Sequence record: OR699282.2
Length of the DNA stretch: 64,000 nucleotides
Direction: 5' to 3' (one strand)
Shown here: positions 43,790 to 62,728 of the stretch, piece after piece
Layout of the letters: each line of letters opens with the position of its first letter
How positions within the stretch are numbered: position 1 is the stretch's first letter
Position numbers and translations under genes: made by a program
Notes under the pieces: model-generated
The model's input: only the letters and a program-made list of their open reading frames with translations
Told to the model about the DNA's origin: nothing
Databases searched by the model: none

Positions 43790-43879
43790 ACTGAATTTTG
43801 GGCGTAACTATGCACCCGGTGGGCTGGAGTCTTTCTCGACTTGATGGAACTATTATACAGTACTGGAAAAATAAAGCAA
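43790..43879 (-). ncRNA. double-hairpin element copy A
   Basis: TTGCTT-16-TATAAT; AGUC-GAGAAA-GACU; GCCCACCGGGUGCA. Confidence 0.55.
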
Positions 43880-43913
43880 TACCCTGGAAGCAAAAAAGTT
43901 TTAATTAATTTGC

Positions 43914-44095
43914 TTGCTATCCTGGGCCGGACTATGGTACTATAATTCAGTACTGAGAAAGTGCGTTTGCCTGCTAGGGTGCGGGAGTGTATCCTTTTTT
44001 TATATCTTGAATTTTGGGCGTAATTCCGCACCCTCTGGGGTTTCCGCTTTCTCGTGTCTATGTAGTAATTATACGCTTTTTCAGGATCAAGTCAA
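43914..44095. ncRNA. double-hairpin element copies B (+) and C (-), convergent
   Basis: cores 43969-43983 GCCTGCTAGGGTGCG and 44027-44041 (minus ACCCCAGAGGGTGCG), each behind its own promoter. Confidence 0.5.
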
Positions 44096-44247
44096 TACCT
44101 AAAAACAAAATAATTGAAAATAATTTAACGCGTTTAAACGGCCTGTAAAGCCCTGGAATGATTGGAATGGTGCAAATGTATAGCTTATGTGTATTAATGC
44201 GTTAGAATGCGTCTGAGGCCGTTTTTTGGGGTGTAGTAGTGATTTGG

Positions 44248-44340
44248 TTGATTCAGTACTGAATAATAGTACTCCTATATAGAAAGATAGTTCCCCTGGA
44301 TTGATTCAGTACTGAATAATAGTACTCCTATATAGAAAGA
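44248..44340. repeat. perfect 40-bp direct repeat (period 53) containing 14-bp palindrome ATTCAGTACTGAAT
   Basis: 44248-44287 equals 44301-44340. Confidence 0.95.
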
Positions 44341-44454
44341 AAACTATTTTAAAAGTATTTGTAGAAAGTACTTGCACCGTACTGATAAAAGCGTATAATG
44401 TTTTACATCGAGAGCGGGAACACTTCCCGCTACACTTTAAAAGAGATGAAAACG

Positions 44455-44817
44455 ATGGCGACTCAAATCAATAAAATCATGCTTAACCTGGTAAACTTCC
44501 GCGATGAGATGAAAGGTCTTCCGGCTGAAACTGTAAAAATTCACATTGCAGCTTATCGGGAACTTATTGCAATGTTGCCGCTTAAGCGTGAACAATACGC
44601 CGCTACTTTGATGCTGGATTCAATGATCCATATAATGATCTCAAATGATTTGACGATGGTTTATCAGTATATGGGCGAAAATTTCGCGGTGTGTAGTAAG
44701 CCAGTACCAGGGATGGCAACAACTGAGGAATTGCACGGCTTAAACTTAAAACAAGATGCATGGGATAATATGCCTCGTTTCCTGGTATGGGCTGACAGTG
44801 GCAAAATTTACAAATAA
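44455..44817 (+). CDS. early hypothetical protein
   Basis: own promoter; ATG 44455. Confidence 0.75.
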   Translation: MATQINKIMLNLVNFRDEMKGLPAETVKIHIAAYRELIAMLPLKREQYAATLMLDSMIHIMISNDLTMVYQYMGENFAVCSKPVPGMATTEELHGLNLKQDAWDNMPRFLVWADSGKIYK

Positions 44818-44911
44818 GTTTAATAAAGTACTTGCATACTAAGTTAAAACAAGTATAATACTTTCTATCAGGTGGGGAATAGTTCCCCACTATAATTAAG
44901 AGATTAATTTT

Positions 44912-45145
44912 ATGAGTACTATTTTAACTGTTTCTCAATCCGTTGCACTGACTGACCTATTAAACGCTTTAAGCCGTTGCACTGAGGTTGGCTTGTTTGA
45001 TGTGGTTGACGTTGCACCGGACGTTATTAATCATTTTTGTGATGCGATGGAAGAATGTAAGGAAGATGATAGCCGTATGATGGCGGTCGCCTTTGAGGAA
45101 GTACAGCCAGGTGAGATCAAAGGTTTACCAGTACTGAAAAAATAG
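44912..45145 (+). CDS. early acidic hypothetical protein
   Basis: own promoter. Confidence 0.75.
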   Translation: MSTILTVSQSVALTDLLNALSRCTEVGLFDVVDVAPDVINHFCDAMEECKEDDSRMMAVAFEEVQPGEIKGLPVLKK

Positions 45146-45227
45146 TACTTGCAAACTAAGTTTAAAAGCGTATAATGTTTTACATCAGGTGGGGAATAGT
45201 TCCCCACTATATAAGAGGATTAAAAAA

Positions 45228-45467
45228 ATGGCAAAATCAAAAATGTTCTTAGGTCACAAAAACAAAACTCATTGGAATGTAAGCCTGTGGATTAATAACG
45301 ATGAGGGATTGTATCGGTTGGCCCTGGATTTTATTAACGACAACACTAATCGCAATGATGCGGCCCGTCATATGATGTTATTTTTAGAACAGACTGGACA
45401 AGATAAAACACCGGACGGATTCAAATATAGCACTACTGCGATCCGTGCGGCGATGGTTGGAATGTAA
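45228..45467 (+). CDS. early protein, paralog of 47341
   Basis: GHKNKTHWNVSLWINN; identical 3' end. Confidence 0.8.
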   Translation: MAKSKMFLGHKNKTHWNVSLWINNDEGLYRLALDFINDNTNRNDAARHMMLFLEQTGQDKTPDGFKYSTTAIRAAMVGM

Positions 45468-45557
45468 TAGAATAGAATTTATTTAAAGTACTATCGCAAA
45501 AAATGATAGTACTTTATAATAGTGTTTTATTCATACACCAACGATAAGGGCAACAGC

Positions 45558-45824
45558 ATGAATATTAAGTATTTTGCGACGCGTGAACAAGCTCGGATCG
45601 CCGCACGCCAGGACGGGGCAACGTTTAAAGATATGGGCGTACAATCGGAACGTGGTAAACGTTGGGCCATTGTAAAGCGTAGTACCGCCAGATCATTACA
45701 GTACTGGTTAGCGGCCTTAAAAAGTCCCGATAGTGTATCGCGTCGAGTGGTAGAAATAAAGCTCGACCGAAAGGGCAACCGCGTGACCGTGTACCGTACT
45801 AAAAAGATTGCAGTACTTGAATAA
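45558..45824 (+). CDS. early basic protein, paralog of 58737
   Basis: TRE.AR..AR..G.TFKDMG..G.RWA..DRKGNRVTVY. Confidence 0.8.
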   Translation: MNIKYFATREQARIAARQDGATFKDMGVQSERGKRWAIVKRSTARSLQYWLAALKSPDSVSRRVVEIKLDRKGNRVTVYRTKKIAVLE

Positions 45825-45911
45825 AAAGTACTTGCAAACTAAGTTTAAAAGCGTATAATGTTTTACATCGAGAGCGGGAACACTTCCCGCCTATAACCTG
45901 GAGTAATAAAA

Positions 45912-60815: not shown

Positions 60816-60901
60816 GTATTGACAAAGTATCTTAGTACTGTATAATAGTTTACATCAAGGGGAGAATAGTTCTCCCCACACCAATAAAAGGAAACATAAT
60901 T

Positions 60902-61174
60902 ATGTCTAGCTACTCCGCTACTATGATCATTAAAGATATGAACGGTAATCCTACTTCTGCTGGTGGATCATTTGGAAACATTAATTTAGATGGTCGGTTA
61001 TCCATGCAATCAGCAATCGATGCAGCGAAAGAAGTTTTTAAGAATGAATGTACTGTTAGTAAGCTGGATTATATGGGATTTGCTATCGAAAAAACTAATC
61101 GTTTTGTGAACTACAAAAAACCATTGATGATTGATACTAACCTGAAAGCTAACGAAGTGGAGTACTTATTATGA
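60902..61174 (+). CDS. early hypothetical protein
   Basis: AAGGA RBS. Confidence 0.75.
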   Translation: MSSYSATMIIKDMNGNPTSAGGSFGNINLDGRLSMQSAIDAAKEVFKNECTVSKLDYMGFAIEKTNRFVNYKKPLMIDTNLKANEVEYLL

Positions 61175-61362
61175 CAGTTGAAGAAGTTAAAAAAGTACTG
61201 GCAGTACTACGCTATCATAATCATTGCAAGGTGAAGAATGATCCTGATTATCTCGATTCATCCCTGGAAGAGGATACACTACAAGCAATAAGCCATATGC
61301 AAACATTAGCAAAGCGTATGACTGAAAAGAACATGCCGGACTATATCGGAAATAAAATTTAA
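61171..61362 (+). CDS. early hypothetical protein
   Basis: GGAG RBS, overlap. Confidence 0.7.
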   Translation: MTVEEVKKVLAVLRYHNHCKVKNDPDYLDSSLEEDTLQAISHMQTLAKRMTEKNMPDYIGNKI

Positions 61363-61449
61363 AAAGTACTTGCATTGTAGTTAGATTAACGTATAATGTT
61401 TTATATCGAGAGGGGGAAATGGTTTCCCCTCAAGTCCAGGAGATACACC

Positions 61450-61713
61450 ATGAACACTATCGAAATCACTATCAATGCACACGTATACGACAACGTAGTA
61501 CTGCAAACTACTATGACCGCTAATGATACCAGTACTTTGCGGAATACTGTTATTAGTGCCGTATGTGCCGCTATCGGTGATGTCGCCCTGGAAAATGCAA
61601 AACACGTAAACGATGGTTTCACTATGTGCAAACGTGATAACGCAAAACATATCATCGTAGAAGGTTACGGCGGTGTAGAATATAATGTTTATATGAAAAA
61701 AGTACTTGCATAA
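61450..61713 (+). CDS. early hypothetical protein
   Basis: AGGAG RBS. Confidence 0.75.
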   Translation: MNTIEITINAHVYDNVVLQTTMTANDTSTLRNTVISAVCAAIGDVALENAKHVNDGFTMCKRDNAKHIIVEGYGGVEYNVYMKKVLA

Positions 61714-61780
61714 TAACTAAAACAAAGTATAATGTTTTGCATAGGGGGAGATATCCTCCCCCACTAAAAGGAGTAATAAA

Positions 61781-62005
61781 ATGGCTAACTTTGATGAACT
61801 GATGCGGGAAGTAGCTACCCTGGCAGAAGAAAAGAAATCATTCGATTCTATCTATAGCACCGCTCACCGTGATTCAGTACTGGCATGTAACCAGGATCAA
61901 AAAGATGAACTAATCGCCACCTATCATGAAGCATGGAAGTACTACCGACAATGGGAGAAAGAAGAAAGAGAGTCTACCATTGACGGCCTCAATAATCTAA
62001 TCTAA
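61781..62005 (+). CDS. early acidic helical protein
   Basis: AAGGAG RBS. Confidence 0.75.
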   Translation: MANFDELMREVATLAEEKKSFDSIYSTAHRDSVLACNQDQKDELIATYHEAWKYYRQWEKEERESTIDGLNNLI

Positions 62006-62081
62006 AAGTTTTATTTCAGTACTATTGACATAGCTTGATAGTACTGATGTAATAACTTTACTAACTACAAGGGGAAACATA

Positions 62082-62339
62082 ATGGAACAGTTCACACAAT
62101 ATCGGGTAAATCCTCAAGCTATGGCCTACGTAGAAGACCATAAAACATTACCAGTACTAACACCAATTAAAGGCCATATCTATCGTGCAATGTCATGGAA
62201 TACCGCCCAGGATAGATATACTACCGCTGGCGTGGGTATGTATTGCGGGAATGGTGAATGGTTTGATCCAAATAATCCGGTAGCCATTGACAGTACTGAA
62301 AAAATGAAATGGGCCGACTACATCGAAGATATTTCATAA
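62082..62339 (+). CDS. early hypothetical protein
   Basis: GGGGA RBS. Confidence 0.75.
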   Translation: MEQFTQYRVNPQAMAYVEDHKTLPVLTPIKGHIYRAMSWNTAQDRYTTAGVGMYCGNGEWFDPNNPVAIDSTEKMKWADYIEDIS

Positions 62340-62429
62340 AAACTATTTGACAGTACTAACCAGTAATGTATAATGTTTTACATAGAGCGGGGGAATAGTT
62401 CTCCCGCCAATAGTTTGGAGTAAAACATT

Positions 62430-62630
62430 ATGTCTATCGCTATCGCCCTGGTTGAAGTACTGAAAGAAGCTAAAGCCAACCAGATCGACGTAAAGATCCA
62501 GGAACTACAAAACGGCGTAATCGGCTGTACTTGTACCGCTGGTGGAGCGGCAGACTATCGAGAACACGAATCACTCGAATCACTGGTTCGGTATCTTACC
62601 ATGATCGTTGATGATTGGAGAATCATCTAA
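62430..62630 (+). CDS. early hypothetical protein
   Basis: GGAG RBS. Confidence 0.75.
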   Translation: MSIAIALVEVLKEAKANQIDVKIQELQNGVIGCTCTAGGAADYREHESLESLVRYLTMIVDDWRII

Positions 62631-62651
62631 CAAAAAAGAATAAAAAAGGGA

Positions 62652-62728
62652 TTGACTCCGGTCAGTCCCTTTGCTATTATATACGCATAGACAAAAACTA
62701 GCCCACAGGGTGCATAGGTGTATCCAAA
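62652..62728 (+). ncRNA. double-hairpin element copy K
   Basis: cassette promoter; GCCCACAGGGUGCA..GUGUAUCC. Confidence 0.55.

Follow-up and report, generated by a model that had tools for sequence, protein, structure and literature searches.

The terminal repeat of a giant Escherichia coli phage carries, in eleven copies, a phage-specific module of non-coding RNA that is strongly conserved and had not been described before. The module is about 50 nt long and follows a sigma70 promoter, with its parts in a set order (an optional 5' hairpin referred to here as helix 1, a near-invariant 12-nt core and a constrained tail), and the 12-mer did not turn up in a relevant context in the literature that we searched. 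As a tentative explanation, and one possibility among several, we propose from the sequence that the module is a protein-recognition RNA tag that would be abundant at the very start of infection.

Eleven copies of one module in the terminal repeat

The window, which is the whole stretch of 64,000 nucleotides analyzed here, is the right end of the 373,488-bp genome of Escherichia phage BAU.Micro_ELP-22 (Asteriusvirus). Its last part is identical, with 0 mismatches, to positions 1-21279 of the record and forms the right-hand copy of the direct terminal repeat (DTR; Table 1); a relative, vB_Ec-M-J, has an annotated DTR of 21,525 bp. The original prediction had listed eleven elements, and a pattern scan together with a covariance model trained on 21 members of the family shows that all of them are real and stand where they had been placed. 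The pattern CCCNNNGGGTGC matches 10 sites of the window exactly, where shuffled sequence would be expected to give 0.14, and the eleventh copy (core 43970, plus strand), a variant with a 4-nt loop, falls outside it. Across the entire genome the covariance model returns exactly the same 11 places and, besides these, only the left-hand DTR copy. Ten of the copies reach E <= 1e-6, and 43947-43998(+) scores E = 0.33. There are 11 copies per DTR and 0 in the other 331 kb.

Table 1. Positions in the window of the eleven elements and associated features
Feature	Position	Strand	Description
DTR, right-hand copy	42722-64000	.	21,279 bp; contains all 11 elements
Element 1	43796-43879	-	TTGCTT, 16-nt spacer, TATAAT, then module with first hairpin; E = 4e-11; directed leftward, toward non-coding repeat region
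Element 2	43918-43998	+	Degenerate; -10 only; core hairpin loop 4 nt; E = 0.33; seven-T run behind tail, terminator-like 43976-43995; convergent with element 3
Element 3	44012-44095	-	TTGACT, 16-nt spacer, TATAAT, then module; core loop AGA; E = 1e-8
Element 4	46173-46254	+	Extended -10 promoter and module; convergent with element 5, cores 45 nt apart
Element 5	46268-46345	-	Extended -10 promoter and module without first hairpin
Terminator-like hairpin	48460-48480	.	Bidirectional; ends plus-strand gene 48203-48454 and element 6 RNA
Element 6	48505-48589	-	Extended -10 promoter and module; stopped by terminator 48460-48480; predicted RNA length ~100 nt
Element 7	53353-53442	+	Extended -10, module with first hairpin; E = 7e-15
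Element 7 upstream hairpin	53353-53380	+	Terminator-like; -35 inside
Element 8	55034-55118	+	Extended -10 promoter and module
Next real gene after element 8	55361-55618		DksA/TraR-type zinc-finger protein
Element 9	57391-57475	+	Module without first hairpin; terminator-like hairpin 57391-57418 contains -35
Element 10	60382-60471	+	Top-scoring window copy, E = 2e-16; terminator-like hairpin 60382-60409 contains -35
Element 11	62645-62729	+	Module without first hairpin; terminator-like hairpin 62645-62672 contains -35

The two convergent pairs and the one divergent pair (43823- / 43970+) are arranged as had been described. Core loops of 4 nt had been assigned to two sites, which is correct for 43970(+) but not for 44039(-), whose loop has 3 nt (AGA), and copy 48532(-), one of the minus-strand copies said to run antisense to every gene in the region, instead meets the bidirectional terminator before the gene.

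Two aspects of the setting were absent from the original prediction: the entire element set is confined to the DTR, and the plus-strand copies are placed in tandem upstream of gene promoters of the ordinary kind, which resemble the promoter-early stem-loop (PeSL) cassettes of T4-type phages (PMC2839356). PeSL-like cassettes (strong sigma70 promoter, G-run/C-run hairpin, SD and ATG) are abundant in the DTR, and other DNA-level signals, AGTACT and Chi, crowd its intergenic DNA. The DTR encodes about 60 small proteins besides the 10 taken into a Pfam scan, in which a zinc finger of the DksA/TraR type and a GNAT acetyltransferase exceeded the cut-off and a protein kinase domain matched below it.

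Structure and conservation of the module

The module is conserved across genera. About 85 copies occur in related giant phages that include 121Q, presumably GAP32, CBB and fHe-Yen9-04, and probably RaK2, and in whole genomes of these relatives all pattern matches cluster in a single region, about 12-20 kb long, with 8-11 copies per genome. Measured by the gathering thresholds of its families, Rfam gave 0 matches in the whole window, and it gave 0 at E <= 10 on 60380-60500. Across bacterial and archaeal genomes totaling 596 Gb the strict pattern has a single match, within chance expectation, and BLAST against 5,426 E. coli genomes returned no match; on these two results we rejected mimicry of a host RNA.

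The first hairpin, predicted for at least five copies, is present in 8 of 11 (absent from 57448, 62702 and 46295) and missing from about 18/85 family copies. It is indeed a true covarying helix, as had been claimed, with compensatory changes in all 4 pairs, and 90-94% of its cells are paired, compared with 15-53% when the partner is slid. Its loop is A-rich, and 2-5 nt separate the helix from the 5' end predicted for the RNA. The core consists of a fixed hairpin and two bases (CCCACAGGGTGC at 53415-53426), with a purine-rich stretch between it and the tail. Two of its C-G pairs are found in 85/85 copies and the third in 81/85, with 2 compensatory U-A and 2 U-G variants besides; the outer pair is A-U in 42 copies and G-U in 38. 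Such fixed letters fit recognition by a partner rather than structural need alone. The fold of the isolated module is thermodynamically ordinary (z = -0.3 to -0.7). An alternative helix made from the GGGTGC bases and followed by a T-run exists in only about 10/93 copies, one of them at window 43976-43995, and an intrinsic terminator or attenuator was rejected on this count.

The fixed core could instead be a duplex-DNA binding site for a phage or host protein, for example a roadblock repressor acting on such promoters just past the start, since it is partly palindromic and does not covary, and lies in DNA that is rich in the AGTACT and Chi signals. We consider this very unlikely, because the half-sites are just 4 bp long and 3 bp apart, every copy has the same orientation to its promoter, and the G-U (38) and U-G (2-4) copies retain RNA pairing while breaking DNA symmetry. 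Family-wide conservation, the fixed strand with respect to the promoter and these pair-keeping variants favor a reading at the level of RNA.

Promoters and genomic contexts

Near-consensus sigma70 promoters had been assigned to all copies. The assignment holds for 9/11, which match the consensus at 10-11 of 12 positions, but not for 43970(+), which has a perfect -10 and no credible -35; the promoter of 43823(-) matches at 9 of 12. The distance from the -10 to the start of the core is 21-28 nt, in agreement with the 20-30 nt predicted. A-runs lie upstream of the module promoters, and in eight of the nine best-matching copies the spacer is 17 nt long and the -10 is TGn-extended, unlike in the ordinary DTR gene promoters with their 16-nt spacer; at least two unrelated promoter types are combined with the module. 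In four plus-strand copies (elements 7, 9, 10 and 11) the -35 lies within an intrinsic-terminator-like hairpin, and the stems of these upstream terminators covary in relatives.

The elements had also been called ORF-less, and no SD and ATG directly follow them (across the family, such a start lies within 60 nt of the module in 1/59 unpaired copies), but the seven plus-strand copies stand 80-430 nt upstream of real genes. The downstream DNA is AT-rich, and most plus-strand copies are followed by another promoter at 25-90 nt. Between 53.4 and 62.7 kb, no terminator was predicted behind any of the five copies, most of which are separated from the gene by an ordinary gene promoter.

Two genomic contexts recur in the family. 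Among 86 copies, 27 face a convergent twin, and in 16 more a terminator-like hairpin stands no farther than 170 nt away, in many cases about 23 nt behind the module (as at window 48505-48554). The other context, without a recognizable stop, comprises 42/86 copies, the five just mentioned among them, and there an ordinary gene promoter comes shortly after the copy. The minus strand of the contig, against the majority direction (in the window, the gene direction), holds 32/88 copies, and convergent pairs hold 28/88. The cores of twins are spaced by 45 nt in 9 pairs from several genera, and read-through RNA of convergent pairs would form a long hairpin (z = -4 to -5.7; for elements 4 and 5, -42.8 kcal/mol and z = -5.7).

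The module might be a mere 5' leader that sets the fate of an mRNA, as 5'-end protection or as a processing site, and that has spread with a mobile promoter cassette in the manner of PeSLs, the antisense copies being by-products of recombination. In favor of this, PeSL-like cassettes fill the DTR, query coordinates suggest that related genomes have their breakpoints at promoter regions, and helix 1 is placed like known protective hairpins, which sit close to the 5' end of the RNA. A stabilizer, however, needs structure and not 12 letters fixed across genera beside a freely varying helix, and no SD and ATG follow the module. The presence of at least two unrelated promoter types indicates that the module is selected on its own, and exactly spaced convergent pairs that recur in several genera are not accidents; we regard the leader as improbable. 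PeSLs are repeated intergenic consensus sigma70 early promoters with a stem-loop, in regions of small unknown genes (PMC2839356, PMC4122927), a description that the ordinary DTR gene promoters fit well, including the hairpin, SD and start codon. The modules share with them a strong sigma70-like promoter with AT-rich upstream DNA, but not the G-run/C-run stem-loop leading into a start codon; their promoter class and their two hairpins are different, they possess the fixed core, and they occur antisense and as convergent twins.

Gene-less promoters followed by AT-rich DNA also recall the transcription-primed origins oriF and oriG of T4, where RNA persistently hybridized to AT-rich DNA, in an unwinding element downstream of the promoter, primes the leading strand. 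The phage encodes T4-like replication and recombination genes and RNase H, and convergent overlapping transcripts would be expected to open both strands, so that convergent pairs would be bidirectional starts. This R-loop idea from the original prediction gains nothing here: eleven origins in 21 kb of a 352-kb genome, with none in the remaining 331 kb, would be odd, another promoter closely follows most plus-strand copies, and no origin-specific features were found at the elements. The T4 origins use middle promoters, are not known to have conserved hairpins, and are few and scattered, in contrast to the cluster of 11 copies seen here with their fixed RNA core, of which we know no counterpart in T4 origins. 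We consider this reading very unlikely.

Possible roles in pausing, antitermination and protein recognition

In 84-88% of copies the tail resembles a pause site, having a Y-G step that is preceded at a distance of ten bases by an invariant G. This signature corresponds to the G-10 Y-1 G+1 element at which core RNA polymerase pauses (PMC4604602); in two counts, 67/76 and 37/44 copies had it in one or the other of two registers. The registers are mutually exclusive (mutual information 0.38, columns 63 versus 65 of alignment A1), and the core hairpin ends 10-11 nt before the Y-G step. These features support the main rival to the tag, which we consider unlikely: a cis-acting co-transcriptional signal, either a pause or a factor-loading site, at which the hairpin in the RNA exit channel and the tail would halt host polymerase about 45-50 nt past the start. 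The paused complex would then be read or modified by the nascent RNA or a factor, as at put, nut and ops, and polymerase from module promoters would behave unlike that from ordinary gene promoters. LoaP, too, uses a leader hairpin. Consistent with such a signal, the module always lies close to its promoter and never changes orientation, the plus-strand copies lie upstream of gene promoters with no intervening terminator, and the spacing between twins would, by its geometry, set paused polymerases head to head. On the other side, a third of the copies face a twin or point away from any gene, the four plus-strand copies that begin inside terminators would be pointless if upstream polymerase were termination-resistant, no -10-like element for sigma-dependent pausing is conserved among family copies, and the either/or pattern of G could simply mark two subfamilies by descent.

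The arrangement of two G, eight bases and T-G has the spacing of ops12 (GGCGGTAGCGTG), a 12-nt signal in an untranslated leader, where T11-G12 induces the pause and G4, G5, A7 and G8 are essential for RfaH (PMC5995543). In the module these four bases occur together in only about 8/76 copies, roughly 10%, the equivalent of T6 is A in 60/85, and the invariant part lies in a hairpin, upstream of the bubble region; identity with the RfaH ops was rejected.

Similarity to put of HK022 lies in two stem-loops right after an early promoter, here supported by covariation in helix 1 and by wobble and two compensatory changes in helix 2. More generally, put and nut are short two-part RNA signals just past early promoters, and the purine-rich loops of helix 1 are reminiscent of lambda nut, which consists of boxA and a boxB hairpin and has a cognate N-type protein. 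The HK022 RNAs, putL and putR, act on RNA polymerase unaided by protein. However, put is co-oriented with and upstream of the terminators and genes that it serves, and put and nut occur in 2-3 copies per genome as against 8-11, of which a third are antisense or convergent and some have terminators placed immediately before the next copy. No Rfam sequence or model matches, including nut, were found, and among the 10 scanned DTR proteins there was no N-like Pfam match and no N-like or Q-like gene was identified. The earlier argument against simple antitermination is strengthened by the minus-strand and convergent copies and by the four copies that start within the terminator stopping the transcript of the previous copy. 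Classical antitermination is less likely than either a tag or a pause.

Abundant ORF-less transcripts have a precedent in the related jumbo phage PA5oct. Its DTR is transcribed early, and two ORF-less RNAs from it, of 236 and 451 nt, annotated without known promoters, make up 2-5% of phage reads (PMC7318152). We looked for the module in these RNAs and it was absent, which we counted against the tag, along with the unremarkable fold of the isolated module and the 10 scanned DTR proteins, which offer just a zinc finger, a GNAT and a weak kinase match. Moreover, transcripts of the 42/86 copies without a stop would cross the next gene promoter into genes, which is odd for a stand-alone small RNA, and the pause-like tail suggests a co-transcriptional role instead.

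The original prediction had offered a sponge or decoy, a put/nut-like RNA and R-loop primers. Its description of promoter-driven, non-coding, structured elements with a covarying first helix stands, whereas no single one of the three functions is favored; the sponge or decoy remains the most inclusive. For a sequence-specific protein-recognition tag, each element would begin an early transcript of its own, synthesized by the sigma70 RNA polymerase of the host from 22 such promoters per packaged genome, in a region that RNA-seq of a relative shows to be transcribed early, with the terminators around the -35 of four copies excluding upstream transcription. The module itself would be the product, with helix 1 optional and needed as structure only. 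About half of the family copies would yield stand-alone short RNAs, stopped either by the twin that converges on them or by a terminator some 23 nt on, and the other half would form the head of long early-mRNA leaders. The fixed hairpin may bind a single conserved protein, whether from host or phage, which would either be titrated or be placed on early phage RNA.

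Copies and promoter classes in the terminal repeat

Megablast matches window 43500-48700 at 100% identity to Escherichia phage BAU.Micro_ELP-22 (Asteriusvirus, 373,488 bp). Gene coordinates place window position x at record position x + 309,488, and because of this offset the window forms the final 64 kb of record OR699282.2. Record positions 1-21279 are identical to window 42722-64000, with 0 mismatches, and form a direct terminal repeat (DTR) that contains all 11 of the 11 elements under study. We call these elements modules, that is, promoter-proximal non-coding RNAs with an optional hairpin (helix 1), a 12-nt core containing a small hairpin (helix 2), a purine stretch and a tail. 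Among relatives, the DTR measures 21,525 bp in vB_Ec-M-J, according to its annotation, 20,668 bp in Sharanji (PMC11895373), 20,993 bp in fEgEco12 (PMC13070987) and 22,456 bp in CBB (PMC5259590). Papers on the RaK2/121Q group of giant phages give promoter predictions only, of the RpoD-like kind (PMC11895373, PMC13070987, PMC5259590), and our literature search for promoter studies in this group found nothing relevant.

The covariance model R1, for which 21 family members without gaps supplied the alignment and the two hairpins the structure, returns the same eleven places that the original prediction had listed and no others in the window. Across the genome, joined from its loci for counting purposes only, R1 gives 11 copies in the right DTR and their 11 duplicates in the left, with no match at E<=1 in the remaining 331 kb. 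The sequence CCCNNNGGGTGC occurs 10 times in the window against 0.14 expected. In oriented extracts, 11/11 copies read promoter, short leader, core and then a related tail. The copy at 43947-43998(+) keeps its place in the R1 list, with a 4-nt loop and a perfect -10, but its match is weak (E=0.33) and it has no acceptable -35.

Two classes of promoter occur in the DTR, which suggests that two regulatory programmes operate there. In the ordinary class, nearly every DTR gene is served by a promoter of its own that has TATAAT and a 16-nt spacer and is followed by a hairpin of a G-run and a C-run, SD and ATG. These cassettes are very regular, running from A-rich upstream DNA and GTAC before the -35 to a leader that begins at about ACATCA, and they match the published description of the PeSL cassettes of T4-type phages (PMC2839356). 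In the module class, 8/11 copies combine TTGACA or TTGACT, a 17-nt spacer and a TGn-extended -10 (CATAAT or TATTAT). Four + copies carry their -35 in the 5' arm of a 12-bp hairpin that has an A-run in front and scores as an intrinsic terminator; in relatives the stem around the -35 still pairs, with different letters. The + modules are followed by AT-rich DNA, usually AGTACTG, and then, beginning with its upstream region, by an ordinary promoter with its gene, and in the five copies at 53.4-62.7 kb no terminator is predicted between module and ordinary promoter. Processive antitermination is argued against by the terminators built into the next module promoter. A Pfam scan of ten DTR proteins found no RNA-binding or antiterminator candidate; it gave a DksA/TraR-type zinc finger, a GNAT acetyltransferase and a protein with weak similarity to protein kinases, which are typical candidates for host take-over.

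Several other features accompany the modules. The 1.7 kb from the DTR boundary to the first real gene is non-coding and carries, downstream of three leftward promoters, an array of 8-nt units that looks iteron-like. Two of the four occurrences of a 21-nt repeat are the tails of the module copies 43823(-) and 44039(-), and tails resembling it are also found at one twin (two convergent copies facing each other) in GAP32 and CBB. The annotated CDSs that overlap or abut modules and their promoters are probably spurious.

Across the genome the palindrome AGTACT is about 12 times commoner than expected (1060 in 373 kb), at 6.4 per kb in the DTR against 2.4 per kb elsewhere; one 50-kb chunk outside the DTR holds 157 against 13 expected, coding regions included, and we found no explanation for these genome-wide counts. 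In the window, CAGTACTG occurs 66 times against about 1 expected; within the DTR it lies 8-20 nt past most modules, and at ordinary promoters it directly precedes the -10 and the -35 and is also found about 60 nt upstream of the promoter. The window contains 16 copies of the E. coli Chi octamer, GCTGGTGG (PMC5041463), where 0.61 would be expected; each DTR copy has 11, and the 331-kb unique part has 17. Nine of the 11 in the DTR are on the + strand, the orientation active against RecBCD entering at the right genome end, eight of them at 50.4-62.8 kb, and the DTR loci of relatives are likewise Chi-rich, mostly on the + strand.

Coordinates of features in the window and of the 63-nt-spaced twins in loci (L) of other phage genomes
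Feature	Position	Details
Regulator-of-chromosome-condensation-like genes	24000-37100(-)	five in tandem by annotation, preceding the ORF array; Chi in frame in 4/5
Paralogue-looking ORFs of ~60 aa	37200-42450(+)	~25, tight array just left of the DTR
Chi in DTR	43299-62767	back-to-back pairs 43299(-)/43311(+), 50353(-)/50415(+)
21-nt repeat	43442-43488, 43792-43812, 44008-44028	four occurrences; e.g. TGAATTTTGGGCGTAACTATG
Imperfect 8-nt units	43529-43628	~12; e.g. GGATGGCT, AGACGGCT, AAACGGCT
CDSs at modules	43732-44031(-), 43665-43754(-), 46308-46418(+)	one a 99-aa GTG ORF across three modules
T-run after alternative helix	43976-43995	
Tandem duplication, 53 bp	44248-44340	non-coding
Ordinary promoter cassettes	45149-62800	about 35 sites
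Twin read-through RNA	46208-46320	long hairpin, -42.8 kcal/mol, z=-5.7
ORF with tandem repeat	46692-47258	perfect 77-bp x2 (entry 46604-46758)
Module with terminator-like hairpin	48505-48554(-)	hairpin about 23 nt past the module; predicted RNA ~100 nt
12-bp hairpins with -35	53353, 57391, 60382, 62645	+ copies
DksA/TraR-type zinc finger	55361-55618	E=1.6e-10
GNAT acetyltransferase	55683-56039	E=4e-9
Kinase-like protein	59729-60370	E=0.005, sub-threshold
63-nt-spaced twins	L006 8028-8159, L009 1227-1356, L034 3061-3190, L012 283-414	

Conservation and structure of the module family

Scanning 2.9 million viral contigs with the pattern shows that the module recurs in contigs of 345-378 kb. One of 345,809 bp we take to be RaK2, and others correspond in length to 121Q (348,532), GAP32 (358,663), CBB (contig 378,379) and fHe-Yen9-04 (354,378); the reported genome lengths are 378,378 bp for CBB (PMC5259590) and 354,378 for fHe-Yen9-04 (PMC13070987). 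All matches of a genome lie inside one region of about 12-20 kb, and in CBB they are found at both genome ends, which are its DTR. Single matches in small, GC-rich contigs have no promoter context and are chance. The covariance-model search across related phages that had been proposed for these elements yielded 89 R1 matches in 225 kb of family loci, 85 of them distinct, which make up alignment A4; alignment A1 holds 76 distinct copies. The family comprises about 85 instances in at least 8 genomes.

Helix 1 covaries, as originally claimed: both-side changes occur at all four pairs, and the covariation score of 0.41-0.64 compares with 0.14-0.19 in shuffles, none of which (0/500) reaches the observed value. 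In the seeds 94% of cells pair and in A4 90.5%, compared with 15-53% after sliding the partner; these percentages lean to structure because the seeds were picked with folding and A4 was fitted to the model; the variety of pair types per position is independent of both. About 18 of the 85 copies have a shorter, A-rich leader in place of helix 1.

Helix 2, by comparison, shows no covariation in A4. Among the 85 distinct copies its first and second C are invariant (85/85 each) and the third is C in 81 and T in 4; the loop reads A (82/85), then C (41) or T (37), then A (65/85). The three G that follow are present in 83, 85 and 85, the next T in 85, the G after it in 84 and the last C of the core in 77. 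The rare variants still pair (2 U-A, 2 U-G), and at the outer pair 42 copies have A-U and 38 have G-U. This retention of pairing in rare and wobble variants speaks more for an RNA hairpin than for a DNA palindrome, and we judge it highly improbable that the module is a DNA operator.

After the core come five mostly purine positions and then the tail, whose columns (A4, n=85) are, in order, T in 80; G in 49, C in 21 or A in 14; a pyrimidine in 85/85; a purine in 85/85; T in 64; and C in 74. The conserved tail letters are exactly those able to pair with the fixed GGGTGC, in a six-pair alternative helix in which 89% of cells pair, compared with 33-65% after sliding; this helix and helix 2 are mutually exclusive. 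Because the variation is one-sided only, this alternative helix lies beyond shuffle testing, and its formation is possible but unproven. About 10 of 93 copies have a T-run behind the alternative helix, so that an attenuator made of the two would fit only these. Isolated modules have ordinary folding stability (z=-0.3 to -0.7), and mutual information gave no long-range covariation in the 3' half. A closing helix or pseudoknot between 5' region and tail found no support (own-pair duplexes at -6.06 kcal/mol scarcely better than cross-pairs at -5.74; 393/5000 permutations reach the observed value). A mini-ORF that starts in the tail was dismissed by eye, the purine stretch abutting its putative start and the start codon being missing in many copies. 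Protein sites of the GGA or GGAG type in the purine stretch are found in only about half of the copies (5/11 here) and are not the feature that all copies share.

Resemblance to known signals

Rfam gave no match, even at E<=10 with a single copy as query, and the 12-mer core was found in no relevant context in the papers searched. In 596 Gb of cellular genomes the strict pattern has one match, which is chance level, and BLAST against 5,426 E. coli genomes has none. With no cellular match beyond chance, the module is, at that stringency, phage-specific and no mimic of a host RNA. In PA5oct, a related jumbo phage, abundant ORF-less RNAs arise from the early-transcribed DTR (PMC7318152); the module is absent from those RNAs.

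The module and the RfaH ops signal, GGCGGTAGCGTG, are spaced alike (two G, eight bases, T-G), but the bases essential for RfaH (G4, G5, A7 and G8; PMC5995543) occur together in only about 8 of 76 copies, and an ops site is ruled out. The element at which core RNA polymerase pauses is G-10 Y-1 G+1 (PMC4604602), and 84-88% of copies have, in either of two registers, a Y-G step together with the invariant G at -10. This pattern is the strongest point in favour of a co-transcriptional role of the module, but the two registers, which exclude each other across copies, could instead mark two subfamilies. We regard a pause or loading site as rather unlikely. A sigma70-dependent pause element resembling a -10 was also rejected, TANNNT reaching only 12-15 of 44 at its best fixed offset in the tail.

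Genomic settings and the possible role of the module

Within their contigs, 56 of 88 copies are on the + strand and 32 on the -, and 28 of the 88 have a convergent twin within 150 nt, which makes 14 pairs. Nine pairs, drawn from several genera, have exactly 45 nt between their cores; four pairs have 63 nt and one has 56 nt. The 63-nt-spaced twins have a conserved palindrome in their centre (e.g. GCGAAATGATAATCATTCGC in L006) that the 45-nt twins of this window lack and that looks like the site of a dimeric DNA-binding protein. Of 86 evaluable copies, 27 face a twin, 16 have a terminator-like hairpin with a T-rich tail within 170 nt (in several genera about 23 nt past the module) and 42 have no recognisable stop. 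Stops and twins on the one side and copies without a stop on the other indicate two settings, a stand-alone short unit, often antisense to gene direction, and the head of a long leader, where the module stands in tandem with a gene promoter. A plain leader or cassette we consider improbable. Cis control of downstream genes cannot account for the third of the copies that face a twin or point away from genes. For an R-loop origin primed from the module promoters, which the original prediction had entertained, we see the slightest chance.

The fixed letters beside a covarying helix, the constant orientation to the promoter and the presence of the module in several genera speak for an RNA that is recognised by its sequence; alternatively, the non-template strand may be what is recognised during transcription. 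We tentatively read the module as a recognition-tag RNA, at somewhat less than even confidence, and leave a small share of the probability to none of the readings weighed here. A trans-acting or tag RNA would fit all contexts, but it must tolerate the 42 copies without a stop. More speculatively, the modules may represent a new class of phage regulatory RNA confined to RaK2-like enterobacterial jumbo phages. Within minutes of the onset of infection, its fixed hairpin would seize a conserved host protein or re-programme it; this protein could be RNA polymerase itself, an enzyme of RNA decay or an immune sensor. About 22 insulated promoters in the terminal repeats would supply the RNA, and the convergent twin promoters would allow terminator-free mass production of short RNAs.

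Giant phages of the RaK2/121Q group are isolated for therapy, and their early gene expression is essentially unstudied. The module offers a testable object, with about 85 instances, a covarying helix beside an unchanging core, confinement to the DTR and exact twin spacing, and it can serve as a marker that locates the terminal repeat and early region in unfinished assemblies of these phages. Whichever partner binds the core, it is likely to be central to host take-over.
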